Source: Lepidodermella squamata (lineage: Eukaryota; Animalia; Gastrotricha). Taken from it: 64,000 nucleotides of DNA. Location: NCBI GenBank assembly GCA_047495785.1, contig JBLDXI010000033.1, positions 2,604,001 to 2,668,000 of the forward strand, in the 5' to 3' direction. Below, piece by piece: positions 14,241-47,959 of this stretch. Each line of letters starts with the position of its first letter. Position 1 is the stretch's first letter. The position numbers and the translations under genes are program-made. Under the pieces are notes generated by a model. That model was not told the DNA's origin and made no database searches. It saw only the letters and a list, made by a program, of their open reading frames with translations.

Positions 14241-17200
14241 TCAAAGCTTTTGAACTAGAGTCCCATCTATAATTATCCTGCTATTCGGCATGGACTCGTC
14301 GATTTCCAAGTCTAAATTAAGAGCCGTATCGGCGGTTCGTTGTCGACGAGCTTCTTCGTTTCGCGCGATCTCGCTATGCCATTCATTGAGTTCAATTGCT
14401 TCGTTGTAAAAGCTGTTCGTAACCGGAACCGGTTCATTTGTTTCACTTTCGAAGTTATCCCGTCTAGATGTAGAAGCTTGGGTAACCTTAACCGGTACTA
14501 ATTCTTCGGATCGAAACTTTTCCAGATGCACAGCTTCCTTGCGAAACTGATCCAGATAAGGTCCCCATTTCTTGTCTGGAAGAACCATTGATTTCAACCG
14601 CTGGAAATTTGAAATTTTTCGCTATAAACGAAGAATAAATTGCCTTAATGTCACCTGGATGAGGCCTCCTTTCCCTGTCACCATAAACCAAACGACTAAG
14701 GAAAATTCGGACCTTTAGTTCAAAACTCAAGTCATTAATTCAAAAAATATACCCGATAGCGGCATCCAAATCGCTGTTCAAAATAAATTTATCAGACAAA
14801 TTCTAGTTATAGTGGGCAGAACGTTTACCTACAAACCACGTCAAAACCCAACCTAGGCCCTCCTCACTGCTATTTCCACGAGGTTCATAGCGAATCCAGA
14901 TGAACAACATGATGAACTAATGAAGACAAAATAATTTTATCGCAAATATTTTTAACAGTATGTTGAAACCGTCAGAATGCCAGGGGTTACGAATCCCCAA
15001 AATATGACAGCAAAAACATGGAGCGGCCTAGTGGGTATCCAAGCCATCATAGTTTGCAAATCTTTCGTAAAATTCTTGAAGCCGTACACCCAGCAAATTG
15101 TTGTGGTTTCCAACACACCCATGAGCAGTACCGCCCAAGTTGCACAATAATCATCGAAAATGGATAGGAGCTTAGGACCCCCCTCGCAAACGAAGGGTAG
15201 ACCGAGAAGGAAGCAACAGCAGCAAAATATCGCAAAAGTTATCGATTTCGTTCTGAAATCCCTTCTCAGTTGTGGGAAGCAGTCCAGCAACGCAGTGAAC
15301 ACCGTTTCAGACATGTTGAACTATTAGGGAAGGTAACAAGCAAATCGAGAATTGAGTTAGGTGAAAAGTTAACCTCCGAGTCTAGTCCGAGGCAAATGCA
15401 CATGAAAAAGAATATGATGGAAAAAGCGACTGAGCCTGGCAGTTGCCCCATCACTTTCGGATAGACAATAAACGCCAGTCCAGTGCCAGCTTCAACGACG
15501 TCTTTCACAGGCCGATCAAGAATGTAAGCCCCATAACCAATGACGGAAAATATCGCAAACGATGCGATGAATGAGGTGAAAGAGTCGGCGAAAACGACGA
15601 TGAGAGCATCTCTGAATACATTGCTAAGTTTTGGGAAATCAATACCGTAATACATTTTCAATTTATAGGGTGAATTGCGAACTTTTTGAATCGGTTGTAC
15701 GAAGCTAAGGTGACCATGCCACCCCAGCAAGCGGACAAGGAGTAGAACAATTGACCAGCCGCAGCGTACCAAACTTCAGGTTGCTTGATCCTCTCGAAGT
15801 CAGGGGTTAGGAAATACATGATTCCGTCGTACGCTCCAGGCAACGTTGCTCCTCGCACAATAAAAATGAGCAACCTTGAAAAAGCCGTTTTCATTTTCGG
15901 ATGATACGGAACTTGAAATGCTTACACAGCATAAGGTGCCAAACAGGTGAAATAAACTATCTTTGGAAGTAAAGGTGTTTGTTACAGATCTTCGTCTCTA
16001 ACATGAGAAGGAATCGAACCTTTCCACTGGATTTGATGCCATTCATCAGGCATAAAAAGACCAGTACCCATATAAACGCCATGCACAGAACCAAGGGCCA
16101 GCGTGGTGTCCCAAAATTTTCCAAGCCGTATGGCTCAACATCACCAAGAGCGTAATTGCTATGAAACGAGAATTGTTCATAGTCGTTTAACTGAAGTGGC
16201 GATTCTTACTGGTAAAATTGAGCAGAAGCCAGAAGGGTATTCACACCGTAAACTTTAGTTAGCGTTTCATTCCAAAAGCCGGTTACAGTCGATAAGTTCC
16301 GCGCCGGGACTTGATCAATTGGGATCAAAGCTGAAATAGATGCCGCATTCGCACGCAACCCAATATTCGTCGCGTTGTAGCACAGACCATCGGCACCGCG
16401 CATTTCTTCCCAGGAATTGGTACAATTTACCTTAGGCATTTCGCACCGGTAGTCAGCCCATGAAGAATAGTCGCAATTTTCCCAAGGCAGCTGACTTGTG
16501 AACGAAAGAAACCTACGAAGCATTGGTCTTAGCATGAGAAAATGGGTTCACTTTCGAAACAGACATGTAATACGCCGACCACGCTGAAAAAATTAACATA
16601 ACGGAAGATAAATAGGTGGAAGGAGAATTTACTGATTATGACATCGTAGTAAATTACAGTCAGGAAAGAGACAGCTACCATTGAACAGCCCACACCGACC
16701 ATAACAGGAGAGTATTTCCAACAATGAAGAGGCCCTTGAGACGTATATTGACCCAAACTTTGCTCTAGGATGATTCCAGAATTCAATGCAATTAACCTAA
16801 AAATGATTGATCGACATACCCAAGACAATAATAGGAAAGCCAACAGTAGCGCTCAATATCCAGTAAATGACCAGAAAAGCCCCTCCACCTTAATGAAAAG
16901 ATGTTTTAACGGGAAATAATGAGATCTTGTCGAAACTTTTACCATTCCTGTAACATATGTATGGAAACCTCCACACATTGCCGAGTCCAACAGCAAACTG
17001 AAGAGAGGCACATGGAATCGCTGGTTTCAGAGTCGTTTAATGGGTTTAAAGCTTTACTCACGCCTATGCAACTGATGATAAATTCAGCTGGATGAGCCCA
17101 ATTTCCGCGTTCCTCATTTTCATCACCCTCATGCGGTTTCTTCACATGTTCACCGGTGGTCTCCTTGCCCAGCTCGATTTCAGATGCCTTTCCAATTGCA

Positions 17201-17406
17201 GAGTCAACTTGTTTGCCAGCGACTGAGATATCACTGATGCTCGAGTTACTATCAATTTGCCGACCCATTTCCACTGTAGGTGCTGGTTTCAAGAAGCTAG
17301 GCACTAACGGGCTCTGCCTGGCAGCGCTTCGAATGCTATCGAGATGGTCTCGAACGCGTGTTTTGCCTCGTTGTAAATAGCCGCGAATTTCATAGTATTT
17401 ATCCAT
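14241..17406 (-). CDS. SLC6/NSS Na+/Cl--dependent amino-acid transporter, GlyT2/ATB0,+-like (copy 1, multi-exon)
   Basis: ERGNW, CIG|[49 protein letters not shown] and WGP motifs across short-intron exons. Gly (not Asp) in TM1 argues for an amino-acid rather than monoamine substrate. Confidence 0.9.
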
Positions 17407-17569
17407 TCCGGCTTCGTTGCTTTTGGCTTCACGATTTCTTGACTGATGGATGACCGTGGAGTTGCGAAGTTGCTTGAAAGATGCTAAAGATAGTAACAGG
17501 CTCTCGTATCGCTGAATGGTCTCTATTCGACTTCCGTTTCGAGTTGTTCTTCGGCAGCTTACCTACGAA

Positions 17570-17596
17570 CATCTGTTTTAATGGTTGAATTTCCCA
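17570..17596 (+). promoter_or_regulatory. Candidate PTF1-type composite site (E-box CATCTG + 14 nt + TC-box TTTCCCA) upstream of SLC6 copy 1
   Basis: CATCTG at 17570-17575 and TTTCCCA at 17590-17596, a two-helical-turn spacing, ~165-190 nt 5' of the ATG at 17406. Confidence 0.3.
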
Positions 17597-18217
17597 AACG
17601 AAAGAATTTGAAGAGTAAGAAGTTTCATAGATCAAGGGAAAACAGTCGCGAGTGGTGATGGTACACCATTGATCGCTGAAATTTAGGTTTTAAATGTATC
17701 ACAATTAAGCGGTAGTGTACTCAAAGTTTCAATTGACAGCTAACCACCGCCCTTGATCCACTGTTCTGGTAATTTTAATTATTTATTTTTAATTTATTCT
17801 GCATCCTACGACGCACGCTATGACAAAATGACACCAAGTGGTGAAAATATACCCTCGATTTATTATGCTTCGTACCGAATGAGTTTTGTATACGTTCGAT
17901 TTCGGTAGAAACGTAGCATTTTAGACGTATTCACAATTCAGATCAAAAATTAACTTCCAGCAATTAGCCAACAGTTACAACATTAATAGCAGAAAGTGAA
18001 AAATAATTTGGCATGCTTTAATAGAAAATTTCTATGGCAACTTTCCATTATAGCTACGAAATATTATGTACAACAATGCATCAGATCGTTCAATCTCAGG
18101 CGGTAGTCCGGCCAGGAATTTTACAAGGGTTAAAGAGTTTTATTTTTTATTGGAAATATAAAGTTATAAAGACTTTCGATTGCAGATATGTATGCAGACG
18201 CTGTAATACCGGGCTTC

Positions 18218-19606
18218 TCAGTCTGCCGATTCGATTTTTTCAAGGTGCCAAGTTTTGCAGCGAAGTCTGGCCTCGCCGTATTGCTGAGGTTTGGAACTGT
18301 TGCCGATGACTTCTTCATCGGCTTCGTTGATGTTGGGCGGAGGTGACAAGCGACCAATCGAACAGCGACCTGCATCGGTAACTCGCCAAGAAACTCGATG
18401 GCACGTTTTCGAAATGGGATTGGTGATGACTATGCTCTGGGGCACTTGTTGCTGGCGAGCACGAGCTCCGAGAGCAGACGAGCCACCATTAGATGTAATT
18501 CCAGCTTTGCCAGAGCCGCCTCTAGCGATTAGCGTGTCACTCAACAGTTTGATGTATCGGATGGCTCCTCGAAGGACAGTCAGTTTTGATTTCTTGTTTT
18601 CAGAGAACAAATCTTGTGGCACGTGGCTTCGCAGCTTTCTGAAAATTAAAAAATGTTAATTATTGAATGAAATAAACTGGGAGAATTAGTCATTTTATCT
18701 GCATGAAACAGTCTAATTTTCGAGGCTCGTAAACAATAAACGATTAGGGTTAGCTTCTATATCTCTCAGCTGCCATTTTCCCATTAGGCAAAATATCAAG
18801 GGTCGGGCTAAAATTCACTAGTCCATCGTGGACAAATTAATTAACTAGATTGAAGCATACCCGAAAGCCTCATTGAGCATGCGCATTCTCCTCCTTTCGC
18901 GATTGTTAGCCAGCTGCCGGGCATTGCCATCGCCCGAGTCCGATCGGGTGTCTTCGTCGATGGGACCAGAGAACGGCCGCTGGTGCTGCAAACTGCCAGC
19001 TGACGACCGCCGTCGGCCGTGTTGACTCGCTGGTCGTTGCGACGGCGGTCCAAACAGCGTCCATGTGTCTTCACCAGGCGCCGGCGGCCGCTCTAGCCAC
19101 GCCGGTGAAATCGGAATCGGCGGCTGGAAGGCGCTCGTGGCGCCGCCAGCGCCGCCGCTGAATAGTAGCGATGGTGATGACGTCAAATACTGGTTGGTGT
19201 TTCGAGGGTTGAAAAATTGCTGATACGGCTGACTCGGCGCAAACAGGTTGGCGAAATCGCTGCTATAGCTGGAGTGGTGAGGACCCTAATTCAACAACCG
19301 AATAATATAACACCGCTTCGATGCAATTTGAATGCGCTCCTTAGATAAGCCGCCTACTAGCTAATAAAAACTCACCTGCGCAGCCGGATGTTTCGCGTTG
19401 GAATGCTGATGCTGATAGGGCAGGTGGTTCTCACTAGGCTGCCACGGCGCGGTGGAAAGAGAGAAATATTCGGCGCCGATTGGCCGTGACGGCAATGTGT
19501 GTACGCCTGGCAGGTAAGTGGCAGAGTTCGGTGGACACATGGCTAGATAGTCATCGATCGAGGCAGCATCGCCCGTCGTTTGAAACCCAAAAAGCATGTC
19601 TTCCAT
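18218..19606 (-). CDS. PTF1A: Group A bHLH transcription factor, PTF1a/Fer1-like (3 exons)
   Basis: Spliced bHLH RQLANNRERRRMRMLNEAFG|KLRSHVP...SKLTVLRGAIRYIKLLSDTL. C-terminal HRVSW and CKTWHLE lie in the same order as the PTF1a C1 (HSLSW) and C2 (AKVWTPED) motifs. Helix 2 also resembles FIGLA, so orthology is not certain. Confidence 0.62.
18767..18783 (+). promoter_or_regulatory. Candidate PTF1 composite site CAGCTG-N4-TTTCCCA in intron 2 of the PTF1a-like gene
   Basis: The sequence cagctg ccat tttccca is directly visible and has the one-turn E-box/TC-box geometry. Confidence 0.4.
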
Positions 19607-20657
19607 CGTGAAAGCACGTGAATCCAGCCTGGTAGTTTTTGCGGCGACTACTTGAGCATCAGACCGGTATTTAGCGGCGTCGATTGACCTTCCGCTCAAG
19701 TTTGGGCACGTCCAATCGCCGTCAATATCGGCGCGGGTGGTTATCTCCAGTAGTTGCGTTTGTTAATTACTCACGAGTAAGCTAATAAAGAGTGCACATC
19801 GAGACAAAGTCGATTAGCTGTTGACTGGCACTGTCGGTCTTATCTCTCGTGACACCTACCTGAAGGCGGCGACGCTCGCTCGTTTGGCGCCTCGCCGTAT
19901 TTGCGGTTCAGTCGCGACGTAGCGCGGCGCCTGCTCCACCGAATCAGGCCGATTCATTCGCGGTGCTGGCGCTGTGTTATCGAGCAGCACGACTGCTGCC
20001 GTTCCCATCCGATATTACCAAGGATACCGGCTATAACTAGCGGGTCCCCGCTCTTATCTTTCAACAACTTCTAGCCAAGCGAAGGCGGCTTCTAGTACCA
20101 ATTAAGCACTCCTTAATGATGTGTCAAGTGACCATGTTATTAGAAATATAAGGGAAATAATACACTAATAATATTATGATGAAAACACCGCGGCTTTACG
20201 CAACCCAATCAACGGAATATTATAACCTACAACACTGCCGCATAGTTAAAAATGACAATAAGTTGAAAAACGTTAATTTTTATTATAAAATCTGGCTTCA
20301 TTTAATAAATTTTCGATAAAATCGTTGGCGAAGTTTTTTCGGGTCATGTGTGCCATGCACGATTTCTTGAAAACAAAGAAGAGATAACAACGTCATGAAA
20401 GCGAGTTGAGCAGCTTATCATCATTTGCATGATCATTTATACACAATAATATATTAAGAAACAATGTGCAAAGTATAATGTTTAAAAACGTCTTTCCGCT
20501 ATTTTGTAGAAAAGAGTAAAATTCACATACATATATTTTAAACATATAGAGCGATTTCTTCGCAGTTGACATGGTACAGCGGTGTGTTCAAGAGAGCATA
20601 CTCTCCAACTGAATTCGAACTTTACAAGAGATGACTTGGTTGGGATATTCAGCGCAT

Positions 20658-23600
20658 CTACAAAGCATCGCTGCTTTTACGCTGATGCTTCTCAAGGTAG
20701 GCAGCTTTCGCAGAGTCGGCGAAGGTGCGTTGAAGTTCGATGTCACTCGACTCGGCGTAGCCAATGCTGCTCGGAACCCGGTAGCTTACGTTTTCACCGT
20801 TACTAGCCGCCGAAACCCGCCTGTGTTTAATAAAATATATTAAAACAAGAAACGAAAAAGTAAACCCAAGAAATAGAGAATTAAAGAAACTCGCCTGCTC
20901 GCCAACCTGCTCGGAACATCTTCGTCTATGATGCATGCCAGAGAGTTATCGACCTCAGCCTTGATCGCTTCACCATGAATCGCAGCAACTTCGCGCTTGT
21001 GTTCTTCGAGGAACGGGCCCCAATGTCGAGAAGGAGAAATTGCGCTTCGGAAGCCGGCTCGGAAACTGCCGAGGCGACGCGTTTCTTGGACCAGCACCCA
21101 AATCGCCATAATAGGCACCCACATGATCACAAATATGGTAACGCACCAGCCGAGGACTTCCTCTCCAATCAACTCTCGCCTTTGGTAACGAGTCCACGAG
21201 TAGATTAGGATGAACTAAATTAGGAAAAATAATAGAGGTAAAAATCTCAGTTGGTTATTCGGGCTGTTCACCGTGAGCATGAATGGAGAGACGATGCCCC
21301 AATAAATCCGCATAACCCAGGGTACGACCTTTGATCGAATTTCGCCCTTCATCAACCACGGCATCATAGCTGAAATGTCTTTGGCGAATCGTGGTGTGCC
21401 GTAGATCCAGGCAATTGACAACGTCTCTACAATTCCGATCAGGAAAACTGGCCAGCCTGCGCCGTAGTCGTCAACCAGTTCAAGCAACTGCATTCCACCC
21501 TAGATTAAGAAAATTTACCAATCAATACGTTAAGGTAATCGCTCCATTTCAAACTAACCGGACACACGAGAGGAAGGCCGAGCAAAAAGAACGGAATACA
21601 AAACAGACCGAAAGAAAGGGCTTTCTTCTTCAAGCTACTGCGAAGGTTGGGAAACTGGTCCAGAAGGGCTGAAAATAATTGATAAGAGAAATACATTATT
21701 GGCAGATAACTTACCCGTGAAAATTGTTTCGAGAGAATTAAATTCAGAATCAAGACCCAATAGAAGAAGCATGAAGAAGAACAAAATTCCAAACGCAACG
21801 GACCCAGGTAAGCTGTCAATAATCTATAGACAAATTCGATCAATTGCAATGAAATTTCGCCGAAAGTCTTTTACCTTGGGATAAAGGATAAAGGCCAAAC
21901 CAGTTCCAGCATCGGCTACTTCATCTATCGGCTTTTGAAGCATGTAAGAGCCATAGCCAATTACGGAGAAGATGGCGAAAGACGCAATAAATGATGTCAG
22001 CGTATCAGCAGCTGAGATAATTACAAGTTTAATAGCTCGATTAAGCTCGATTAGTATACTCATTACATACCAGTTACGATGATCGCATCTCGAAGGGTGT
22101 TGGTATGGAATTTATTATAAGAGCTGGAGAGATGAAGAGCAAAATCAGTCAGGTTAAACGTTGTTAAAAGTTTTTACGAACCTCAGAGCCATCATCCCGC
22201 CCCAACAGGCCGATAGCGAGAAAAAGAGCTGCGAAGCTGCGGCATACCAAACGTTGGGGTCCTTGATTTTTTCAAACTATCACATAATATACATTAAAGA
22301 TTCGTCAGCCGAAACGTAGGTCTAAAATGATTGCTTACATCCGGAGTCAAGAAGTACATTATCCCATCTCTTGCGCCAGGTAAAGTCACCCCTTTACCGA
22401 TTAAAATGGCAAGAACCTGTGATCAATGGCGGTCAATCTCGAAAGGATGCTTCTAAATTATTCACTTACGACGTAGGGGAACACAGCTGTGAAGTACACG
22501 ACTTTACCACTAGATTTGATACCGTTCAAGACTGTAATAACGGAGAAGTCACAGATAATAGATAATGCAAATAAAAATCACGAAAAACTCACGCGCAAGG
22601 AAAACCATAATCCAAGCCAGTAATAAGCACAAAGCTAGCCAAGTTTGTGGTGTGCCAAGTGCAATTGCCGAAAATCCCGACCCTATCTTTCCGCTTTGCC
22701 CCAATACTTTCCGGCTATTTTGAGGAGAAACTGATGATGCTCATTGAATCGTAAAAATATTCGCCAACTCACAAGAAAAATTGCTCTGTTGAGAATTGCG
22801 GCGCGCGGTTGTATTGGGTGGCGAGATCTTCATCCCAGCAACCGATGACGGTGGTTTGGTTACGAGGCAACTCATCAACTGCGTAGTAGCACTGAACAAC
22901 AGCGTTCGGAATCGTAGAGTTCTTCGCTTTACAGAACGTTGAGATAAGTTGAGGTGGCTGTTGACGAGCGTTAAACCATGGCTCAAGTGTGTAGCACAGC
23001 CCGTCTGTTGCTGGGAACTGGTTCGGGCCAAAGCAGGCAACACGCGGCAATTCGCAACGATAATCAGCCCAGTCCGAGTAATCGCACTTGGTCCACAGAA
23101 GCTCCGAGCGGAACGACGCGAATAAATAGTACAGCGCCCAAGAAATGATAACGTTGTAGTAGATTGCACCTATTGAGCTGATCGCGCACATCGAATAGCC
23201 GAGTCCTTTCACGATAGGCGCGAATTGCCACACACCGGTAGGTCCTTGACTCGTGAACTGACCAATGGAAAGCTCGAGAAAAATTATCGGAAATCCAACC
23301 TGAGAAATAATAAGCGATCAATTTTGTTGTAGTTGAGATGAGCAGTCATACCGTAATTGATAGAATCCAGTATATTAGCAAAAAGCTACCACCGCCATTT
23401 TTGTAGCACTAATTTTTCGCAAAAGAATTATGAAAAGGTAAGGAGATGTTATACTTTTTTTACCAAATATGGGAACCGCCATACATTGCCGAGGCCAACG
23501 GCGTATCCTATGCAGCTTAAAATGAAATCGACGTGCGAACTCCAATTTCCTCGTTCCTCGTTCTCATCGCCTGCATGAGCTCCGCCTTTCTTTTCCTTTG

Positions 23601-24025
23601 CTTCCTCCGTTGCCTTGATGCTGGTGTCAGGTTCATCCTCGTCGCTCTGAAGGAGATCGGTGCTGCTGTTTTTGTCCCGGAGTATCAGGACAGGCTCGGA
23701 AAAATTGACAGGATTAGTTGCCCCATCCCCTCTAGTATCATAAGTCGGATTCTATAATAAAATATTTAAATTAATTGCTGTCTTCAAGAAATCCTAAGAA
23801 AGCAGGATGTTAAGAAATTCGCCTTACGTTAAAACTTTGCTGGTTAAGACTGTATGGCCGTGATGCCGCACTTGATGATCGACTCGCAGCTGGATCATGC
23901 GAAACGAGAGGCGGCAATACGAAGACGCCATTGGTTGTCACCGACGATCGGCGAGATGAGCCAATAGAATCGGCCTGATAGCTCCGAGCTCCCGCGATCT
24001 CCACGGGCTTGGGCTTGGGATCCAT
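20658..24025 (-). CDS. SLC6/NSS amino-acid transporter, GlyT2/ATB0,+-like (copy 2)
   Basis: [58 protein letters not shown] and WGPF motifs. The last intron is probably GC-AG (20821-20894). Confidence 0.9.
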
Positions 24026-25114
24026 ATGGAACCGCTCTATAATATCAAATTGACCCTAATAAAAAGCAGAGTAAGGTATATATAATGACCGTTCGTCTCG
24101 TCGTAGAAATTATCGTATTAGAAATAGAAATAAGAAATTGAATTCTCTGAGACGTCATTCACGTGCGGCAGGTGAGGGTATCCATCATTGAAACATCGTG
24201 CCACAACCCTAATGTTCCATAGTGGTATGATATTTTTTTACGCATTACATTAGTGTGCGGTAGCTAAATAATACTTATTATGCTTTCAACCAAGCCCATA
24301 GGCACGTGTAAGCCATGGCATGAAAGTATAATACAAACAAAGTGTTTGCCAACAAATAGCTGCTATAGGTAATTCGCTTCGGCCAATATCTTAATTTCCG
24401 AACTGAAATACAAATTTGAGATTCTCGAATGAAGGTGACAAATAATATGGTGGTAATTTACAGCCGAATGGTACATCTCTGAACAAAAAGCAGACTTCAA
24501 AGAGGGCACGCGACTCGGGCATGGCATCAGCCTTCTGCTGAAGGCACCATATTTCCGCAGAGAGAACGCGCGATTCAAAGATAAACATTTTAAAACCGAC
24601 TTGATTTTACTTGATTAATTTGTAATCTTCCTATAATGTATTGAATGATGAACAAAACCATGGCAAAAATCAATACTGCTCAGCCAAATTTACCGAACGC
24701 GGCCGAAACAGAGCGGGATAGGAAATAACGTCTGTGAGATGTCTACACTTTATGATAGAATTTTCATGGCTCAGTCGAGCATGTATATGCAATTCTAGCA
24801 CACTGGTATATTAAATAGTGAGCCAAAGAGGTAAACTCGGGCCACCCGGATGTAAAGTATGCTACTCCGTGCTATATCAAGTATAAGGACCACACGTTGT
24901 TTTTATGCGGGAGTTATTTTTCGCGCTTGACCAGTGCGTGCATTAATGCACTTCCTATTACCATTCTGGAAACTGCCACCTCAACATCACTATTTTTGCT
25001 GTTGAACTAGTTAGCATATGACATGTTGGTCATTTCCCTGCGATCGAGAAATTGCCAATAACGCGATTTTATTATTTAAAATCTGCCAATAATCGAAAGG
25101 AACAAATGGAGCAT

Positions 25115-25501
25115 TCATTTGTACAAACATTCATTCGCCGCGTGTTTCATCAAATAGTCTGCATTTATGAAGTCAAAGTGGCAAAACGAGCACATGTACA
25201 TCTTCTTGCCCAAGTGATCGGATTGGTCATCCAAATAGCTAACAGCATCAGTGTAAATATGCCCGCAATCACGGCACGGAAAATAACCTTTAACTCGGCT
25301 CTTCAGGTCAATCGAACTTGGCCGCGCCGAAATTTTCGCCTTCTTCGCTGGTGTTCCTACCAAACTTTCTTCCGACGATGACGAAAGCTCAATAACCCGA
25401 GAATCATTCTTAGATGCTGGTATCTTAGCTGCATTGCTCAACTGCGCTTCTTTTCCCGAGGTTGGGATTTGATTTGACACCTTTGAAGACGACGAAGCCA
25501 T
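25115..25501 (-). CDS. Small nuclear protein with two atypical C2H2-type zinc fingers
   Basis: ATG 25501 follows acceptor tccag. Motifs: VIELSSSSEE, PAKKAK, FPCRDCG...LDDQSDH (first His replaced by Asp), linker HLGKKMY, and CSFC...LMKHAANEC (C2HC). Confidence 0.6.
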   Translation of the reverse strand: MASSSSKVSNQIPTSGKEAQLSNAAKIPASKNDSRVIELSSSSEESLVGTPAKKAKISARPSSIDLKSRVKGYFPCRDCGHIYTDAVSYLDDQSDHLGKKMYMCSFCHFDFINADYLMKHAANECLYK

Positions 25502-25725
25502 TAAAACCTGGACAAAATCTGACCTCAATCTAAAATTAAAACCAGATTTCTTGAGAATTGATAGCAAGCAACTAAAATTTATTTGTAAACTGAAGCTTCA
25601 AACACTGCGGGTAGTCCCTTCAAATAATAATTATTTTCACCGGATCAATTGCAAGACGCAAGACAGTGATGTGCACCGGGAAATTATTTCGGCAATACGT
25701 GCGCGACATTAGCGCACACCATACC

Positions 25726-28700
25726 TCAGACCGCATTAGGTGAGTCTGGCGTAAATGCCGCATTTGCTTGCTCGGTCTTGATGGCCGCGGCCATTTTCTC
25801 CTCTTTTCTGCGCTTCGATACGCCGCGAGGGTCGACGTCAAAGTTCGGTCCAAGGTGTTTAACGAGCCGGCGGTGTTTGACAAAGTACGGGCCCCAAGAG
25901 TTGGTCGGTGAGCACTTTTCCTTTATCCGCTGTTGAATAAAATGTTGCTATGTTGGAAAAATATTATTTCCTAAATAAATACGCACCTGCCACAAGTTTC
26001 CTTTCGCCGTGGCGATTTCGTAGATAGCTATTGCTGGCGGCCAAACCAACACGGCGGCTACGCAACACCAGCCGATGATTTCATCTGTCCTATTCGTCGC
26101 GATCGGCTCGTATGTTACGAATGAATAAATCAAGATGAATGTGATGATGCCTGGGCTGATGATGCCCCAAAAGGCCGTGATGTAGTATTGCCCACAGGCA
26201 ATCCAAGATGAACCCATCATAAGTTTGAGATCTTCGTGAAATTTGCTGCAGCCGTATAGCCAGCTGATGCTTAGAGTTTCGATGATTCCAACGATGAGAG
26301 CTCCCCAGCCTGATGAATATTCGTCGACGATTGTTGACAGGTAAGACCCTCCCTTCACCAACCAAAATTATTAAATAAAATCCTCGTAAATTCTCGAAAA
26401 ACGCTTTTCTTACGTTGCAAACCATTGGTATTCCAAGCAGAAAGAATAAGATACAGAATCCTCCTAAGAAACACGATTTTCTGAACAAATTAACGCGAAA
26501 GTAAGGTAGTTCGTCCAGGAATGCCTGTTGGAGAGAAAAGATTCGTCAATTGCGGAGTAAATGTAGGTCATCTCTAGTTAACTACCGTTAGAACTGTCTC
26601 CATCGTGTTGAATTCTGAATCTAGACCCAATAGCAGTAGCATGAAGAAAAAGGCGATAGCCCATGCAACGGATCCAGGTAGCTCAAGGACAATTTTTGGG
26701 TACATCACAAACTAATATTGCAATTTTTTGGTTTTGTTTTTACGAAGTAAACAGTTCAGGAAAATTACCGCTAAGCCAGTTCCCGCTGCCGCTACCTTGT
26801 CCACAGGCTTATCCAACAGCAGAGCTCCATATCCGATAATTGAAAATACAGCAAATCCTGCATAAAAATTTGCAGGGAATGAACAAGAGATGCCAAAGGT
26901 GAATTACCGGCGATGAATGAAGTGAAGCTATCGGCGAAAACTGAAATGGCAGGATAAAGGCTGTAAACTTTTCTACAACGAAGGCCTAGTTCAACTACCG
27001 GTAATAAGGGCATCTCGCAATACTGTAAAAGAAAGTTGGATTGTATGAGCAAATATATGCCAAGCTGACTTTTACCGTTGTTTTCGAACTTGTTGTATGA
27101 CGATAGAGCGATCATTCCTGGTGAGGTATTGACGAAATAGCTTCGAGCCTAAAATACTGCGGTTTATTCTTACCTCCCCATGAACAGCTGAGTGAAAAGA
27201 ACTGTGGAAGAGATAGAATCAAGCTTCAGGCAAATAATTTTCCTAATTTTACAAACCAATTGATTTGCTGCCGCGAACCAAACAGAGGGCTGTTTGATCT
27301 TTTCCCAATCTGGCGTTAGGTAAAATTTTATGCCGTCTAGCGCTCCCGGCAAACTGACACCGCGCCCGATCAGTATAAACAATATAAGGTAGCTATATAA
27401 GTAACATAGGGATATATTTCGCGGTGAATTTTTGGAAAGCGGCATCGCTTACGGAAAAACTGCTGTGAAGTACACAACTTTTCCACTGGTTTTGATGCCA
27501 TTCATTACTATAGCATTCGGTAGATAACCTGAACTTAATTAGAAATCTTAATTAGAGGGAAAATTACGGCACACAAAGACGAAGATCCAGGCTAGCAACA
27601 GGCATAAAACCAAACCCCATGACGGTGTACCTGTAATCAGATGATAGAATTGTTGGCAAACTAAATCCCTAATCTAGCGAACCTATGTTTTCTGTGTTAT
27701 CCGTGTCGTACATGCGTAAAACATAGTGATGAAAGAATTCATCTGTTGACAACTTTGGCGCTACGTCATTGTCTATTGCCAGATCTTCATCCCAGTAACC
27801 AAGGACCTGTTTCAATTGCTCGGAAAAATGAGTATTTCTTGTTGTTTGATTCAATACCGTCGAAGCGTTGCGATACAGATTGGCCGATGTCGCGTCGTAG
27901 AAATGTACGCAAGTCGCGCTGAAGTAGGATGTCTGATTGACTATGGATGAGGTGACATTCGGGCAGTCTGTGAAATTGAAAAATTCCGACGAAGACAATA
28001 AAGATAGACTTTCCCATGATTTCGTCAGGTATGTTGCGTTAAAGCAAAGCCCATCGGTTGATTTGATCTCTGTCATCGAAGAGCTGTTGCTATTATCACA
28101 TGGAACTTTCCCTAATTCACATCCTAGTGGCAACACATTCGAACGATTAGACGTTTTCATTATAGTGCAGAACTAACTGAAGTCAGCCCAAGATTCAAAA
28201 TCGCAATGCGTCCACGGAAGAACAGCCCGAAAAGATGCGCATAGCATGAAGATCGACCAGGCTATGTCAATTTAAATACAGGCTCATTGATACACAAATT
28301 GGAACCTTTAACCAACCAATGATAATGTTGTAGTAAATGCATGCTGGAATTGAATTTGTTATGATGAATTTATTTTACTGCAGCTGAAAATTACCCAGAG
28401 CTGATAGCGCAACCATTGCGTATCCGATTCCTCGAATGATAGGCGCAAAGCCCCAACAATGCATTGGACCTATGCAGTTGTCAATATAACCAGTGAAACA
28501 CTAGGCATACCTAGTCGAATTATCTTACCTAGACTTGTAAATTGGCCGATAGCTTGCTCGAAGTAGACTAGCGGAAATCCAACACAACAGCTGCGAGTGG
28601 ATAGTGATTCATTAGAATCGTTATACAGCAAGAAAATACTACCTTAGAATCCAGTAGACGATTAGGAAACAGCCTCCTCCATTCTTTGAAAACGTTTTGA

Positions 28701-38448: not shown

Positions 38449-40151
38449 ATGCTGAAGCAAACTTGTTGGACCGTAATTATGGCAATAGCCTTGCTCGGGC
38501 TTGAAACAAGTGGTTGCAGAAAAATAAAAAATATCATCGATGGAGGTTAGTTTGACCCCCCTTTTCTCACAGGTTTCAATATTATACTTTCAGTTGGTAA
38601 AGTTGGTAGTAAATTGTTGTCATTTTCGGCAAGTAGTAGTAGAGCTGTAGTGTCATCGGTTTCCAGTAGTAGAGCTTTTGCGTCATCGGTTTCCAGTAGT
38701 AGAGCTATAGTGACATCGGTTTCCAAGTCCAGATCACTTATTCCGCCTACATATTCCGCGAGATATTCCGCGAGTGTCGTTCGAACGAGTTACGGTCTCA
38801 ATGTTTTGCCGTATCGATCGTTGACGGGATACCCGGTGACAAGGTTTTCCTCGCCAGTGATTTATCGCCCGATTTATTACGGCTATCATCCAGTCATCTT
38901 TACCCCTATGCCACATTGGCATGACCACCATTATTACCATTACCATGATGGTTACTACTATCGCAGCTCCAAACAAAATGTTAAAGCTGGAAGTTCACCC
39001 CAAGTTCGATTCAACGAAGACTCGACGAAGATTCGTATGTTTACTCCAAAATAAAGCCTGTGGAAACAATCAAGATATTCCCTTGCAGGCGTCATCTTTT
39101 CAAACTTGGCCGATCACTGTTCGAAAAAACGGGAGTATGGAATAGATGGGAAGGAGGAATATCTCATCACTAGACTTGCGCCTTATTTGAGTAACGATGG
39201 AAATAGCAGCAGCGCCAATACAACTTTAAATGCAACTTTATCGTCGCCTGCGAGAGTTTCAAACTGCTTGTTCACTATCGCTGGTCCGACGGGATCTTTG
39301 ATCCATGTCTTCGCCAACAGCACGGGCTATCGCCAGTGGCCGAAAGGGTGCTCAATCAAAATAAGGGATGCCAGCAACCAGTATATGATGGTAAATAATT
39401 GAAATTATTTCCGATTTTTAATATGTTTAATTAAGCGCCTTTTGACCAAATGCATCGTAACTTACGCAACCTGCAGCAGGATTTAAATGAATGCAGCGCG
39501 ATTAAAGAAGTAAAATACTTCCGCTTAGATTGTCACCACAGGCCAATCCTACATAACTAGAATCCAGTGTTCGTCAGCCGTGAACCCAGCCATAGGCTCG
39601 GGCCGTATCAACATCATCGGGAAACATGTTAAGATCGTTTCAAGATGTTTTTTATGGGGAGAAAATTAAGGTGGGTAAATAACTGTGCTTTCAAGGTAAC
39701 ATTTCGGCTGCCAAAATATATACTTCAGGCTGCGCGAGTGTGATTAAGGGTACAAAGTAACCATTTGGGCTGCACACGTTGAAATTGGGCGCGGGATTAA
39801 GAATTGTGCTGCGCGCGCGTGCTGCAGGTTGCAAAATTGGGCGACGGACTTCGGTGCGCCTTGAATTTATTGCCGATTTTATGCATTTTTAATGTTTTTT
39901 ATTAGCTCCATATCTATGACGGCATGAGTGACTTCTCAATCTCCAAGGAAGCCTACTCAATTACAAATCGAGCAGTATTCGAGTTTACTTCATGCCCGCA
40001 AAATGAAACGAACCCGAATTACGCAATCGGTGTTGAGTACGCTGTGGAGGTCGGTGACAGCTCATCCGGCTTCTCTACTTTACATTCCGCGAATATCTTG
40101 CTCGGTATGATGACTGCAATTGTTGCTGTAAAACTAAAATATACTGACTAA
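38449..40151 (+). CDS. Secreted low-complexity + CUB-like protein, paralog A (exons 38449-38545, 38594-39034, 39089-39390, 39906-40151)
   Basis: Signal peptide MLKQTCWTVIMAIALLGLETSGC, Ser/Arg repeats, Tyr/His/Pro-rich tract, Cys-containing domain and hydrophobic C-terminus. Intron phases 1,1,0 are shared with paralogs B-D. Confidence 0.8.
38635..38730 (+). repeat. Coding 30-nt tandem repeat x3 (SSRAVVSSVS/SSRAFASSVS/SSRAIVTSVS)
   Basis: agtagtagagct...tcatcggtttcc units are directly visible; the repeat is absent from paralog B. Confidence 0.75.
39420..39860. mobile_element. Insertion in intron 3 of paralog A (MITE-like)
   Basis: This intron is 515 nt versus 55 nt in paralog B. It holds a perfect 13-bp inverted repeat gcaacctgcagca (39466) / tgctgcaggttgc (39820), and the insertion is flanked by an imperfect ~20-nt direct repeat (ttgaaattatttccgatttt / ttgaatttattgccgatttt). 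Confidence 0.45.
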
Positions 40152-40159
40152 AATGTAAC

Positions 40160-40760
40160 GTATGCGTAACTTTTTTTTGCCTCGCATTTTTACAATATCT
40201 TCATAACCATGGGGAATTTTTTAAAGCGGATTTCGTCAGTTGATAGATCTAGTCTGTGGTAAACTTTCCTCACTATTCGAAAATAATAGCACTCAAACGG
40301 CACAACGGCGCCGGGCTACGGCTACTGCTATTTCAGTGCTACGTAGTATTATTGGGTAGCACTACGATGCTACGGCCAGCTTAAAAGATTTTTAAAAACA
40401 TAAAAACCGGCATAGGATATTCACGAATTTTCGTAGACTATTTCTATAAAAAGGGAAGCTATCTGAAAACAAATAAAAACCGAAATACACAGTCGGGATA
40501 ACATTTTCAAGAATTCGGCATGTTACCAGCTGAATATCATACGCCACATCGGATGCAGAAATGCCATTTTCAAAAATGAGGATTTTTAACAGAAGTCGCG
40601 GACAGCATTTTTGTCATAATCAATTTTTTCTCTTGAACCCTATTATAACGAAAACTTGAGTAAAGTTTACCCCAGACTAGATCTATCGACTGGCGAAAAC
40701 CGCACTAAAAAATTCCTCATTGTCATGAACTTAGTGATGCAAAACAAATATTACGCATAC
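40160..40760. mobile_element. Non-autonomous DNA transposon (MITE) with long imperfect terminal inverted repeats
   Basis: ~60-bp arm at 40209-40267 (...gatagatctagtctgtggtaaacttt) is the reverse complement of 40662-40721; outer ends are gtatgcgtaa / ttacgcatac. The element is absent from the homologous 3' flank of paralog B. Confidence 0.7.
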
Positions 40761-40920
40761 TTTAATACTTTCCCGTTTCGAATCTTCTTTCCCTTGAAGG
40801 GAACTACCTAATACACTCCTTCAATAGTTGAGTTGAACAAAAGAATAAATTAAAAATTTGGCTTTTTTACGTCAACTAAAACTCTTAACCATTCAAAAAG
40901 GCTTTGTTTCGGGTTCCGGG

Positions 40921-41030
40921 ACCGCGCTTTTGCTACCTTACAACAGAGCTACCGACCGACAAATTAGTCCAATGATCATTACTACTTTTCACGGAGTTAT
41001 TACGACACTATACTATACGCCGAACACAAC
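40921..41030 (+). pseudogene. Relic of paralog C exon 2
   Basis: cagagctaccgaccg...gatcattactacttttcacgg...ctatacgccgaacacaac matches 43520-43628 with indels, and follows a copy (40800-40915) of the spacer at 42910-43025. Confidence 0.75.
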
Positions 41031-41634
41031 AGAACAGGTACTGCATGACCATGGCCAATTGACCAACAATCTTTCAAACACTCTTTTGATGCTCTACGTC
41101 TTGCCTTTTGACGCTGCACCCGAAAGGAAACGTATATAAAGGAGCCAGTAAGATTTTCTTTTATCGACTTCTGCTTGTGATGCTGATTTATGGGCCGTTA
41201 ATGCAGCCAGCAACATGTGGGCTTCAAGTTTAGTAACGTAATGGACCATTTCAATTCTATCGCCAATTTCCGATTATTTTATATCCGATTAACTGTTTGA
41301 CTCTTCCGGTGTTTATTACGTTTTTACTTTGAATACAAATGGGACGGATTGGGAAGCATTTAGAAGCGTTTTTTATTTGGCAGGCTCTGGACTTCGGACT
41401 TTAGCTACTGGTTCTGGCTTTAGCCGCGAAACATTGTGATTTGCTGAAGATACAGCACGTGGGACCATCCTTATTAAATTCAACGATCGTAGAAAAAAAT
41501 ATGACAACGCTGGTTTCCTGACGCAAAAAAACCAGGCTATTGCAACACGTGCCTTTTCGCCGTGCTATATAATATTGAAGTTTGATCGCTAACAGAAATA
41601 ATTTGTTGAGTTCTGTTATCATATGCTTGGGAAA

Positions 41635-42875
41635 ATGCTGAAGCAAACTTTTTGGGTCGTAATTATAGCGATATTAGCCTTGTTAGGCGTTGGAATAATC
41701 GATTGCAAAAAAGTCAAAATCAATATTGGTGTAGGTGAAGGTTAATTTGATTCCCTTTTTCTCACTTGTTTCAATATACAACTTTTCAGGTGGCAAATCG
41801 GCGCCTTCGTCCTCGATAAGTAGCAGTAGCAAAGGTATATCAGTTTCATTTTCCAGGTCCAGATTTGGTACCTATTCCCCGAGTGTCGTCCGAACTACGA
41901 GTTACGGCCGCCCAGTTGTGCCGTATCGATCGTTGACAGGATCGGTTCCAAGGTTTTTCTCGCCAGTGATTTATCGCCCGATTTATTACGGCTATCATCC
42001 AGTCATCTTTACTCCTCTGCCACATTGGCATGACCACCATTATTACTATTACCATGATGGTTACTACTATCGCAGCTCCAACCAAACTGTTAAAGCTGGA
42101 AGTTCAACCCAAGTTCGATTAGACGAAGATTCGACGAAGATTCGCAAGTTTAATCCAAAATAATGCAGTTTGGTGCTATTAAGATATTCCTTTGCAGGCG
42201 TCATCTTTTCAAACTTGGCCGATCACTGTTCAAAGAAAAAAGAGTACGGCATTGATGGGACGGAGGAATATCTTATCACAAGACTTGCGCCTTTGAGCAA
42301 TGATGGAAAAAGCAGCGCCAATACAACTGCAAACGCAACTACAACAACTGCAAACGCAACTACAACAATTGCAAATGCAGCTACAACAACTGCAAATGCA
42401 ACTACAACAATTGCTAATACAACAAAAATGCCTGCGAGAGTTTCAAACTGCACTTTTACAATCGTTGGTCCGAAGGAGTCTTTGCTCCATATCTACGCCA
42501 ACAGCACGGCCTATCGCCAGTGGCCGAAAGGGTGCTCAATCAAAATAAGAGACGCCAGCAACCAGTATTTGATGGTAAAAAAATAGAAGTTTTCGTCGAT
42601 TTATGCATTTTTTATTTTTTTGTTAATAGCTCCATATCTATGACGGCATGAGTGACTTCTCAAACTCCAAGGAAGCCTACTCAGTTACAAATCGAGCAGT
42701 ATTCGAGTTTATTTCATGCCCGAAAATTAAAACGAACCTGAACTACGCAATCGGTGTTGAGGTCGCTGTGGATCTCAGTGTGAGCTCATCCGGGTTCTCT
42801 ATTTTACATTGCGCGAATATCTTGCTCGGTATTACAACTGCAATTATTGCTACAAACATCAAATATATTGACTAA
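41635..42875 (+). CDS. Secreted low-complexity + CUB-like protein, paralog B (exons 41635-41734, 41790-42143, 42198-42574, 42630-42875)
   Basis: Recent duplicate of A (shared HWHDHHYY.YHDGYYY and IFSNLADHC); signal peptide ends IDC-KK; GC-AG intron 2; ANATTTT repeat. Confidence 0.8.
42317..42424 (+). repeat. Coding 21-nt tandem repeat (ANATTTT/ANATTTI), mucin-like with N-glycosylation sequons
   Basis: About five gcaaacgcaactacaacaact-type units. Confidence 0.8.
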
Positions 42876-43157
42876 AATGCGATTAAAATCGTCTTATTCT
42901 TGAATGAAAGGAACTACCTAATACACTCCTTCAATAGTTGAAATGTAATATGTGAAATGTAATAAAAAGTTGGCTTTTACGTCAACTAAAATTCTCAATC
43001 ATTCAAAAAGGCTTTGTTTCGGGTTTTAGGCCTGATTCATTTGATAGGAGTTCAGCACACTCAGTTGGCATGCCACAGCTATGACTCACCCAAGCCATGT
43101 ATAAGATCGCTCGCCGAAGTAGGCGACACAGTTTGAATCTCAAGAATAGAGAGTAAT

Positions 43158-44349
43158 ATGCATTTATTCACCTTTTTGGCAATATTGGGGGTATCTCTGG
43201 CCAAGTCTCTCGGTCAATACAACATCAATAATAATTACGGGAATAATCAAGGTAATTATTTGAGTGATAAATTACTTTATGATTGAAACATTCCTAATTT
43301 TTATGAAGCTGGAGGCAATTATTATGGAAATAATGGCAATCAGCCAGATAACGGACCAAATTTGAGAGGACCTCCCGTTTTTTCGGATGGCCGTATCACT
43401 TATCCTTCTTACGCAACTAGAAGGACTGCGTATGGTCGACTTGTTGTCCCATATCGCGCTGTTCAGCCTTCAGGATTCGCAACGTCTCTACCGCAACTGT
43501 CTTCTGTAGTTAATAACAGACCACGATTACTACCGTACAACACCATGCAGAGCTACCGACCGTCAAATTACGCCAACGATCATTACTACTTTTCACGGGG
43601 ATATTACTACTATACGCCGAACACAACCCCTGCTTACCCAGATGCAACGCCTTCGATACTGAATCCACCCCCAACTCGTAAATTAAAAAAAAACTCGAGT
43701 AGCAAGATGTTTTGATTTCTCCATTATCTAGGTATGATTTTCGCCAACTGGGCAGAACAATGTGTGAAGCATATGCAATACGGAATTGACGGGCGAGACG
43801 AGTATGTCGTGACCAATCTGCAAGTTCGAAGCAGCTACGTTCCATTGCAAGATCGCATAACACTGTCATCGTCGTGCAGCTTCAGCATCGTTGGTCCAAC
43901 CGATGCCTTGCTTCGTATTGTTTTCAACACGACGAATTGCCGGCAGAAATGGCCAGCCTATTGCCGAATTGTGGTCCGAGAAATGGGCGATGATGGCCGT
44001 GCCAGTGACTACTACGACAGTAACTTGCCATCACAGCAATTGGTAATTGTGTTGATAGCAAAAAGTTGCACTTTTCATGACGCTTTATTAATTTTAGTTG
44101 GTGATCGACGGGGGATCAGTAAATTCAATGCCTCAAGGATCCGATGGGTTGTGTTCAAAGGAAGTATTTTCGGTCAGCAACAAAATTGGCATCGATTTCA
44201 CATCCTGTTCGGTCGAATCGAACGATTACACTCTGGGCGTCGAAGTAGCAATCGCGGTTGATGGCGCAGGATTTTCCATGCTTTCTGCGCCTGGCGGCTT
44301 TTACTGGCTATCTATGTTGTTGCTTCTTGCTCATCTCTATTTCCTCTGA
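43158..44349 (+). CDS. Secreted low-complexity + CUB-like protein, paralog C (exons 43158-43251, 43309-43677, 43732-44042, 44098-44349)
   Basis: Signal peptide MHLFTFLAILGVSLA; N/G/Y/Q-rich N-terminus; YGRLVVPYR; IFANWAEQC...YGIDGRDEY; six Cys; hydrophobic tail. Confidence 0.8.
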
Positions 44350-46470
44350 AAGCCTTAATATTTTCTGCCGAATTTTATTCTAATTAGTAAAAAAGGGATT
44401 GATGAAATTGAAGTTTCAAACCATGAACGATGAATGAGACAATGGATTCGAAATCGCATAGAACAAATATCTTGCTTCGTGCGATAATTTCCCTAATGTC
44501 ATACGTCATAGGATTATATTCTCGCTGGAATTCAGTTCAGCTGTTTTCATTAGTGGGAGGATGAAAGGATAGTGTTCATCGAATCCCAATGAGTAATCTT
44601 ATTTAATTGCTACTCCAAAAACTAGTTGTTGGGTTGATCGATGTTGTAATATCTAACAAAAATGTCAATATTACAAGCCGAATGCCGAATGAACTGCAGT
44701 TTGTAGCTTAATGCAATCCAGACGGCGCCAACATCACCTCCTAACAGGGTATAAATTATTGGCCAAAGAATATGCAAAGATTGCTTATCACGTGCCTTCA
44801 CTCATGACTCATGGATATGCCTTGTCATAAAAAGGAGAGCCTGTAGAATATGGCTACACAGGTACGCCATTCGCGAAACTAACGCTCAGGATTAATAGTT
44901 ACGATTCAAATCTAATAATAATAATATGAATGAAGAGGTACCTGCCTATGATTAAATCCACATCTACTATTTTTTACAGCGCGTAATTATTTATACAGAA
45001 TGCACTCTTTGCTGAAACTCAATATCACGTATATTGCATGTGCCGTACAAACCTTACTTATTTTGCTGCACCAGCTTCTCTTTTGTAAGATAACCTGTCT
45101 TCGTTATATTGATATGTGGCGCGAATGAAGAAATGCTTAATAGCAAGATTGTGCCTCGCTTTAATTACAGACTCTTACACTAAAACAAAAGTAATGCCAG
45201 AAGTTGAAACAGCAGCCAATGGGGGATCTCAATAATTCGAAATTCGTAGCTCATTTACCCCATTTTAAGTCTGCTTAGATTCAAAGCATGAGCGAAAGCT
45301 ATACAAACCTGGCGCGGTTATACAGGATCAGCCCACAAATGGCGCCGAATTAAACTTCATTTCTTTTCATCAACTTAATTTTACGAAATCGCCAGAAATG
45401 GCGTGATTTCCTTTGGAACATTCTAATCGAAGTCTAACAACTGAATCAACAAAACTAATTCCTAGCATGACGTGTTGCCTGGATTCGCGCATTCTGGCAT
45501 TCAGCGCGCATATGCTCGCCCCGATCACAGCAGCGCGGACCTTTATATCGGCTATGTTTCATATATAGCGCGCTATAATATTCCTCCTACAGCGAATATA
45601 TCAACGCAGCGGCCTTTTCAGCTGAATGCGCCCTGATGTGTGTGCTGCGATATCGATTTTGAGAAGCGATATAAAAAATATTCGCATAATATAGCACATA
45701 CACAAAGCATTTACGAAATGTTGTTATTATAGCGCACACACTCGCACACTGAGATGCACAGTTGTCACTGCAAAAAATATCAGAAAAATGATTACACTAT
45801 GGTAGTTTTCGCGTCATTCTTTCGCTACTAAACATCGCTGTTTTCACTGTTTACCTTTACCGATACAGCGGCTTTGGGATGTAATTATATTGCTTATAGT
45901 TTGCTGAAGAAGCATCGTTTGCTTCGCTGTTTTTTACCAAACTAACTATCTAGTATGTTTTGTTAATAGTTTTACTTTCTAACTCTTTCTTCTTGTTTGG
46001 GAAATAATTTTATCATGAAATTGAAATCGATACTGAATTATGAGTCATGCAAATCACGAAATTCTCTCCTTCATTATTCATGCGTGGGCAGTAGAGCGAG
46101 AGAGTAATTTTATGCGGAGGGCGAACTCATCGGCTTTCTTTATAAGGGTATAGCTGGCCAAGAAATCAGCACGCTTTATTAATCACTTATACACCAGCAA
46201 TAAATAGTACCTATTAGGTATGTGGGTGAAAACAGCGTTTGCCTCCCGTTGTGCCGACCGCACAATCAAAACACACCGTTGATATCGTTATAGCAATGTT
46301 GTTGAACCTCATCCACAGCTATATATCGCGCCTACTAGTGCCGAATCGAAGCGATAAAATAACAGCACGCGGATCTTGCTCGCCCCAAGCGCCAAACGCG
46401 TCTAATCGTTGTTTGCCTTTCAATTATTACAACATTGCTTGATTCCATCTTCTATTCTTCCGCTATAGAA

Positions 46471-47959
46471 ATGGTCTTGAATGAGTTTGTCTATTTAACC
46501 AAACGGAAATCGAGCTTATGTTTCGTGTTATTGCTATGTCTTTTGTCATTGGATTCAATCGACGCGAAACGAGGCGGAGGAGGTGGAAGTAGAGGAGGTT
46601 TGTTCGCATTTCGCGATCAGTTTTGTCATATTTTTTATATTCTGTTTATCAGGAAGCAGTGGAGGAAGTAGGGGAGGTAGCAGTGGGGGAAGCAGGGGCA
46701 GCAGCAGTAGCAGCAGTGGAGGAAAATCAAGCTCAGGAGGAGGCTGGTTCGGCAGTAGTAGCTCAGACAGCGGTGGCAGCTCATCATCCGGGGGTAGCAA
46801 CTGGTTCAGCAGCAAATCATCCGGCAGTTCGACAGGCTCGAAATCTGGTGGATGGTCAATTTTCGGTACGAAATCAGGCACAAAGACCTCGACCGGCAGC
46901 GTATTTACGCCAACCAATCGATACACGTACCAGAGCCCGGTGCGAGTGACTAATTACGGACGACCTGCTGTTCCTTATCGAGCCATCCGACCGGCTTACG
47001 GCTCCACCTACGTAGTGCCTGTCATATACTCACCCGTTCGATATCGACCCGTTTTCTTGCCTTCCTATTATTACTACTGGCCTTCGATGTACCACCGCCA
47101 CCATTACTATGGCTACTACCGTCGACGATACTACGACAGGAATCGCTACTCAACTGAGAGACCAGGCGAAACTCCCGCACCTTCGGAAGATGATCCACCT
47201 ATGCGTAAGTTGACATTGAGGAATACTAATTTTCGATAATTTCGTTGAAATATTTCAGAGGCAATTTTTGCGAATCTCGCCGACCACTGCGCTATTCCCG
47301 AATACGGGATAGATGGACAAGAAGAATATTTCATTTCAGCCCTTGCTCCTAATGCATCTGCCGCCCCGACAGATGGAGGGTTCGACAGCTCTGTAGGCGG
47401 ATCGACGACCCCGCCTTCATCATCCCCTCCTCCACCCATTCAGTTTACCCCGAGTTGTAACTTCGATATCGCTGGACCCGATACTTCGGTACTTAAGATA
47501 ACCTTCAACAGCACAAAATGCTTCACAACTTGGCCAGTGGAATGTGAAATCAGTATTTCTGACGTTATGCCAAACGATTCTTTTGATGATGATGACTCCT
47601 TCGATCCATACCTGGTAAAATATTTTCCGCGATTTTTATTCATTTTCTATTAATTATCGTTGATTTAGCTGAGACTTGATGCCAAATCAGACCTGGCTGC
47701 GTTGGCAAATGGAACTGACATTTGTTCGAAAGAGATCTATTCGAGGTTCAACAAGATCTCAGTCAACATAGCCCATTGCTCTGGCAACCTTGACACCTTC
47801 GACTACGCGATCGGCGTTGAGGTCGCCGTGCTAGTCGACGAAGGTGGCTTTTCAATTTACCGACCTCCGCTGAGCTTTAGCCGCTTATTTGTCATCTTCG
47901 TTTTAATTTCAATGGTCGCTAATTCCAACTTTCCGACGTTCACCTACAAAACGTCTTAG
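46471..47959 (+). CDS. Secreted low-complexity + CUB-like protein, paralog D (exons 46471-46597, 46653-47204, 47259-47614, 47669-47959)
   Basis: Signal peptide followed by KRGGGGGSRGG, a Gly/Ser tract with GGWF repeats, a Tyr/Arg/His tract, IFANLADHC...YGIDGQEEY, six Cys and a hydrophobic C-terminus. Confidence 0.8.

Follow-up and report, generated by a model that had tools for sequence, protein, structure and literature searches.

The DNA analyzed here is a window of 64,000 nucleotides (nt) from the gastrotrich Lepidodermella squamata (GenBank assembly GCA_047495785.1, contig JBLDXI010000033.1, positions 2,604,001 to 2,668,000 of the forward strand), in which positions 38449 to 47959 hold a cluster of four genes, G1 to G4, for candidate surface proteins. 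Coordinates are window positions; exon borders were set from open reading frames (ORFs) and splice signals, and the analysis was conducted exon by exon. The original prediction had described four genes sharing a four-exon plan with intron phases 1, 1, and 0, and the open frames and splice signals bore this out in all four models, every gene lying on the + strand. The summed exon pieces gave proteins of about 361 (G1), 360 (G2), 348 (G3), and 441 (G4) residues. The motifs that had been listed for the group were all present in the exon-by-exon alignments, with 25 columns invariant among the four genes in exon 3 and 15 in exon 4. Paralogy was far above chance, the profile matches in the species' own genome having E values of 1e-37 to 1e-47.

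Exon 1 encodes a signal-like N terminus in each gene. In G1 (38449 to 38545) it comprises the start codon, a signal-peptide-like hydrophobic stretch, and a basic CRKIK motif past the likely cleavage site, ending in phase 1. The signal-like stretch is accompanied by CKKVK in G2 (41635 to 41740, with a further in-frame ATG at 41623), by the onset of an Asn/Gly/Tyr tract in G3 (43158 to 43251), and is followed by AKRGGGGGSRG in G4 (46471 to 46597). Exon 2 encodes an N-terminal arm that begins with a low-complexity tract: Ser/Arg in G1 (38594 to 39034), Ser rich in G2 (41790 to 42143), Asn/Gly/Tyr in G3 (43309 to 43698), and Gly/Ser/Arg in G4 (46653 to 47204), whose arm is the longest and contains three G-G-W/N-W-F spots. 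A conserved core follows, seen in G1 as Y-G-x-x-V-x-P-Y-R and S-P-V-I-Y-R-P, and then a cluster that is His/Tyr in G1, Tyr in G3, and His/Tyr/Arg in G4. The G1 arm is predicted to be disordered, with an isoelectric point (pI) of about 10 and 10% Tyr, and that of G3 has 14% Pro.

Exon 3 carries the first part of the domain described below as a divergent CUB, and exon 4 carries its remainder and the C-terminal tail. G1 exon 3 (39089 to 39390) encodes the first two-thirds of the domain, with the conserved cysteines Cys1, Cys2, and Cys4, Tyr in place of Cys3, and a loop rich in N-glycan sequons. In G2 (42198 to 42574) the loop has an N-x-T sequon array encoded by a tandem repeat, G3 (43732 to 44042) retains Cys1 to Cys4 complete, and G4 (47259 to 47614) has a Pro/Ser-rich loop in an acidic segment of pI 4.1. 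G1 exon 4 (39906 to 40151) supplies the last third of the domain (with Cys6 and without Cys5), the small residues DSSSG, a 12-residue hydrophobic run, six terminal residues, and the stop codon. The corresponding exon of G2 (42630 to 42875) likewise encodes the second part of the domain, small residues, a hydrophobic tail, and a stop; that of G3 (44098 to 44349) has Cys5 and Cys6, DGAG, and a hydrophobic tail reaching the final residue, and that of G4 (47669 to 47959) has DEGG, a hydrophobic run of 12 to 15 residues, 12 polar residues, and a stop. The basic starts, the four distinct low-complexity tracts, and the hydrophobic ends, with 0 to 12 residues past the run, were thus as originally described.

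Of the 12 introns, 11 have GT-AG borders, and all are 33 to 57 nt long (the 33-nt intron following G3 exon 2) except intron 3 of G1, which measures 515 nt compared with 54 to 55 nt at the equivalent position in the other three genes. Inside this intron (39570 to 39870) lies a dispersed repeat, found in at least 25 copies at 74 to 90% identity elsewhere in the genome, and its presence accounts for the additional length. Intron 2 of G2 (42144 to 42197) requires a GC-AG splice with the donor GCAAGT at 42144, where the orthologous position in G1 reads GTATGT. A GT donor for this intron was ruled out, since the nearest GT, 4 nt downstream, breaks the frame.

The identity of the exon 3-4 domain was approached with a profile, A4, built from the uninterrupted domain of the paralog L007, six ectodomains of transmembrane relatives, and exons 3 and 4 as separate pieces. 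Searched against 1.84 billion representative proteins, A4 returned only 17 matches, comprising eight family members and nine multi-CUB proteins with E values of 2.8e-9 to 4.4e-4; the two names that were looked up were Branchiostoma (amphioxus) CSMD1-like and tolloid-like. The alignment to these true CUB domains spans the second CUB cysteine (family Cys2) through the domain end. Evidence for the fold came from L007, in which the domain is naturally uninterrupted, the exons of G1 to G4 being left unjoined. AlphaFold2 supplied with A4 modeled L007:1498-2055 as a sandwich composed entirely of beta strands, the tail forming a C-terminal helix, with a predicted local distance difference test score (pLDDT) of 76.8 and a predicted template modeling score of 0.70. 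The first Foldseek match to this model was the spermadhesin 1spp_B (E value of 8e-6), and the 32 matches at an E value of ≤1e-3 were mostly CUB domains, the remainder being other small beta-sandwiches. In VIA-align, CUB domains made up all of the top 50 entries, and the model aligned to the spermadhesin CUB 1spp_B with a Z score of 10.7 and a root mean square deviation of 2.6 Å over 109 of 112 residues. ESM features gave CUB at 0.89, which was treated as a lead only. By these profile matches and models the domain is a strongly diverged CUB, in agreement with the CUB-like beta-sandwich that had been proposed.

The divergence was also apparent from what the sequence-based searches missed. PF00431 and PF02408 matched no single member even at an E value of ≤10, and Pfam scans of the exon pieces, the intronless paralog, and the transmembrane relatives yielded only chance-level matches under the cut-off; the earlier view that the family was an unrecognized one stood. 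The PDB sequence profile search gave just chance matches to WD40 designs, and word-index protein searches with the L007 domain and the L011 ectodomain came back blank against a length-filtered collection lacking this genome's proteins. An Rfam scan of the window found nothing. Compared with the CUB superfamily (PF00431; the spermadhesins PSP-I/PSP-II, 1spp, and aSFP, 1sfp), the family domain shows the same beta-sandwich across its whole length, the first cysteine pair at the expected places, and, as in spermadhesins, a single CUB per protein. It differs in its N-terminal motif, I-F-x-N-x-A-x-x-C ... Y-G-I-D-G-x-E-E-Y, in large glycan-rich loop insertions, and in being joined to a membrane tail and a disordered arm. 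The acidic calcium-site residues are missing as well: when the profile is aligned to P0007, the family consensus has Lys/Gln, Pro, and Cys at those three positions. The Glu/Asp/Asp acidic site marks a calcium-binding subset of CUBs and does not define them all.

CUB domains have four conserved cysteines in two disulfides (1-2 and 3-4), whereas the family domain has six, including a family-specific pair. These cysteines vanish in pairs, Cys3 with Cys5 in G1, G2, and L005 and Cys4 with Cys6 in P0001. The paired losses suggest bonding of Cys3 to Cys5 and of Cys4 to Cys6, for a putative disulfide map of Cys1-Cys2, Cys3-Cys5, and Cys4-Cys6, with up to three disulfides per domain. One N-x-T sequon, before Cys3, is invariant, and further sequon arrays occur in the loops.

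The exon 2 arm comprises 120 to 190 residues and is basic (pI of about 10), with 10 to 12% Tyr. Its N-terminal part, of low complexity and different in each paralog, is built from short tandem repeats, of 30 nt in three copies in G1 (38635 to 38725) and of 12/24 nt in G4 (46651 to 46724), and a 21-nt repeat of 4.8 copies (42323 to 42423) encodes the sequon array in the G2 CUB loop. The coding tandem repeats show a route by which the low-complexity parts grow. Beyond them, a Pro/Tyr/Arg core of about 90 residues is kept in nine sequences, including P0019 of another organism, in the order T-x-Y-G-R-x-V-V-P-Y-R-S, S-P-V-x-Y-R-P, and lastly the His/Tyr cluster. The G1 cluster has seven His within 14 residues; G3 and G4 are poor in His (0.8 to 1.6%). 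An RGG-like start is found in G4 and P0019. When folded alone as a single exon, with a shallow alignment as input, the arm showed no secondary structure (pLDDT of 48.6). The arms had been described as exchangeable and disordered: disorder is indeed predicted, and free exchange does not agree with a core of this length conserved as far as P0019. No arm relatives outside the family were found by word search with the P0019 arm in a length-filtered collection lacking this genome's proteins. The ESM Atlas returned only bacterial clusters at 0.81 to 0.86 for the arm, and these were rejected as noise.

At the two ends of the proteins, the N termini have hydrophobic cores of at least 10 residues (mean Kyte-Doolittle value of 2.6 to 3.7) with small residues at the likely cleavage sites. 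The C termini, evaluated by hand rules, have small residues, a spacer of about eight residues, a hydrophobic run of 12 to 18 residues, and 0 to 12 terminal residues, a pattern found in G1 to G4 and in the paralogs L005 to L008. This pattern fits simple rules for a glycosylphosphatidylinositol (GPI)-type anchor, which it may specify, G4 being the weakest case. The signal-like N termini, the sequons, and the paired cysteine losses together point to export to the cell surface.

The family proved to be larger than the four genes first recognized. Profile searches of the 121.2-Mb, 151-contig assembly identified about nine loci of the tail-anchored (GPI-like) type, four in the window, one on contig C2 (L005), and four on C3, together with about eight more distant loci of a transmembrane type on C1. 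The published L. squamata genome has 122 Mbp in 157 contigs with 43% GC (PMC11660948), and the GC content of the window is about 43%. The transmembrane loci are clustered at G000:C1:4052975-4068417 and C1:5022545-5023069 (L009 to L012, L014, and L015). The transmembrane paralogs are type I proteins with the same divergent CUB, a true transmembrane helix of about 22 residues, a Cys-rich (palmitoylation-like) juxtamembrane part, and long PPxY-bearing cytoplasmic tails of 60 to 230 residues. L012, interrupted by in-frame stops, is possibly a pseudogene. In the tail-anchored paralog L007 (G000:C3:4389124-4392423) the whole CUB occupies a single exon (L007:1498-2055) and an additional intron interrupts the arm core past P-Y-R-S-I-R, so that the family does not keep its introns at fixed positions. 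The anchor type appears to switch at least twice on the family tree, which is short and weakly supported.

Outside this genome, the A4 search found only eight family clusters, each of them without a name and derived from an environmental assembly (ENA or Logan). This agrees with the lineage-specific character that had been proposed, the family being nearly confined to this genome, and going by the proteins searched it is restricted to a single, little-studied lineage of animals, probably the gastrotrichs. P0019 (294 amino acids) has a signal, an RGG/Ser arm, the conserved core, and the first CUB part, and it nests among the arm-bearing paralogs on the same weakly supported tree. At the site of the G4 donor, ATG C|GTAAGTTG, its sequence is M-R-K-L, as expected if a GTAAGT donor at that place had been read through. 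Judged by such features, P0019 and P0002, both from ENA contigs, look like prokaryote-style ORF calls through short in-frame eukaryote introns. The arm of P0004 and P0022 is of another, Asn/Tyr/Ser type; both also possess the CUB domain and a hydrophobic tail. The longest contig given for P0001, P0020, P0004, and P0025 is 24,074 nt in every case, and other sets share values of 22,191 and 17,180 nt. Because of the shared 24,074-nt value, transmembrane and tail-anchored members of the environmental relative probably lie on one contig.

We next consider selection. Among the young clade of G1, G2, and L005, the ratio of nonsynonymous to synonymous substitution rates (dN/dS) in exon 3 was 0.22 to 0.29, and purifying selection thus acts on the CUB domain. 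In the older paralogs synonymous sites are saturated; the motifs are nevertheless kept. For the young pair G1/G2, dN/dS, calculated on few sites, was 0.68 in exon 2 and 1.8 in exon 4. Many of the exon 4 changes in this pair fall in the C-terminal tail, which GPI anchoring, if it occurs, would cleave off. The cluster is a real, selected, lineage-restricted gene family.

How might such proteins act? As the best explanation, held tentatively, we propose that they are glycosylated, membrane-tethered proteins made of a CUB and a disordered arm that serve as tethers or organizers between the apical cell membrane and the overlying matrix, a function that we infer from their parts. Each protein of about 350 to 440 residues would enter the secretory pathway, become N-glycosylated, and be retained at the outer membrane face, probably through a C-terminal GPI lipid anchor or a very short membrane tail. 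The single divergent CUB next to the membrane would form a protein-binding foot, and the N-terminal arm would point away from the membrane toward the surface matrix, be it cuticle, scales, or glycocalyx. There the Tyr/His arm may be embedded in the matrix, cross-linked through its tyrosines, or metal bridged through its histidines, and the variable tracts may set reach or charge. L. squamata has a scaled cuticle. A comparable logic is known from insect Knickkopf, a GPI-anchored apical matrix organizer, with which the family would share the principle of a lipid-anchored extracellular protein holding the overlying cuticle. The domains of the two are unrelated, DOMON in Knickkopf and CUB in the family, and a cuticle role of the family is hypothetical.

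Several points weigh against a matrix tether. No peroxidase, tyrosinase, or matrix gene is adjacent to the cluster within the window, and CUB domains have many roles, so that the fold gives no pointer to a matrix function. The disorder prediction for the arm is based on just nine sequences. In addition, the short hydrophobic run is followed by six polar residues in G1 and G2 and by twelve in G4, unlike a textbook GPI signal.

The CUB fold would also suit co-receptors or auxiliary subunits, in which the membrane-proximal domain binds a further membrane protein in cis (a ligand-gated channel or a receptor, for instance) while the arm recruits or clusters partners, and the transmembrane paralogs would then be signaling or endocytosed versions. 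Neto1/2, the Caenorhabditis elegans proteins SOL-1 and LEV-10, and the neuropilins are surface proteins whose CUBs bind surface partners; Neto2 and neuropilin CUBs were among the structural matches, the family too has type I transmembrane members, and these carry PPxY tails. We nevertheless regard this role as unlikely. The known co-receptors lack a Tyr/His-rich basic arm, contain several domains (at least two CUBs, LDLa, FV/VIII), and mostly span the membrane with true transmembrane helices; no sequence-level orthology between them and the family was found. The acidic calcium-site residues used by many ligand-binding CUBs are those replaced in the family, and some nine paralogs with fast-changing tracts suit a coat better than a dedicated subunit.

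Two further possibilities appear distinctly doubtful. In one, an expanding lineage-specific family would serve diversified surface recognition or defense, its variable arms and glycan-rich loops meeting microbes, mates, or conspecifics. Expansion has been both tandem and dispersed, the arms vary by tandem repeats, and dN/dS is relaxed or raised in exons 2 and 4 of the young pair. The best conservation, however, is in the arm core and the CUB rather than at a hypervariable binding face, purifying selection acts on exon 3, and the exon 4 change lies largely in a tail that would be cut off with GPI anchoring. In the other, lipid anchoring would not occur, and the hydrophobic run would either serve as a short membrane anchor, of single-pass or tail type, or be cleaved, releasing a soluble Tyr-rich precursor of eggshell, cuticle, or adhesive. 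The polar residues past the run in G1, G2, and G4 are in keeping with this, as is the nature of the closest structural match, spermadhesin being a soluble single-CUB protein, and secreted materials that harden or act as adhesives typically have such a basic, Tyr/His-rich composition. Against it, runs of 12 to 15 residues are too short for a normal membrane span, all paralogs retain, about 8 to 10 residues upstream, the small-residue stretch that a GPI signal needs, and the true transmembrane paralogs look quite different.

The likeness to PrP and Shadoo noted in the original prediction held as a matter of layout, with a different fold, and went no further. The part order is the same (signal peptide, basic repetitive disordered N-terminal half, folded domain, and lipid-anchor-type C-terminal signal); the folded domain is a CUB sandwich rather than the three-helix domain of PrP, there is no octarepeat and no detectable homology, and the Pfam scan of the exon pieces gave no prion-family match. 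A functional analogue, lipid anchored and using a disordered basic His-rich arm to bind copper or zinc or to self-template, is extremely unlikely in spite of the dense His/Tyr clusters and the RGG-like starts of G4 and P0019, given that no Ala/Gly hydrophobic tract occurs in the arm alignments and that His is so scarce in G3 and G4.

Returning to the membrane-matrix tether, a bolder form of it, which we consider quite unlikely, is that the arm core and its His/Tyr cluster constitute a new extracellular module that folds or assembles only on a partner, or becomes cross-linked or metal bridged, and that the lipid-anchored CUB family would thereby build or hold the membrane-like epicuticle and scales of gastrotrichs. 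If true, this would offer a first molecular handle on how the gastrotrich cuticle is made. A limited literature search found no molecular description of this lineage's surface biology, and the combination of a divergent CUB, a conserved disordered Tyr/His arm, and a lipid-anchor-type tail was found neither in Pfam nor in that search. A previously unrecognized family is now defined by a diverged CUB missed by Pfam, a putative third disulfide, the conserved disordered arm, and the lipid-anchor-type tail. Should the membrane-cuticle link be true, its members would be entry points to gastrotrich cuticle and scale formation; should it be false, they would form an ordinary lineage-specific surface gene family.

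Elsewhere in the window, ORF translations indicated several tandem fragments of SLC6-type transporter genes on the minus strand (14200 to 28200), a basic helix-loop-helix gene at about 18.2 to 19.7 kb, and an HNF1-like homeobox gene on the + strand at 11.2 to 12.8 kb.

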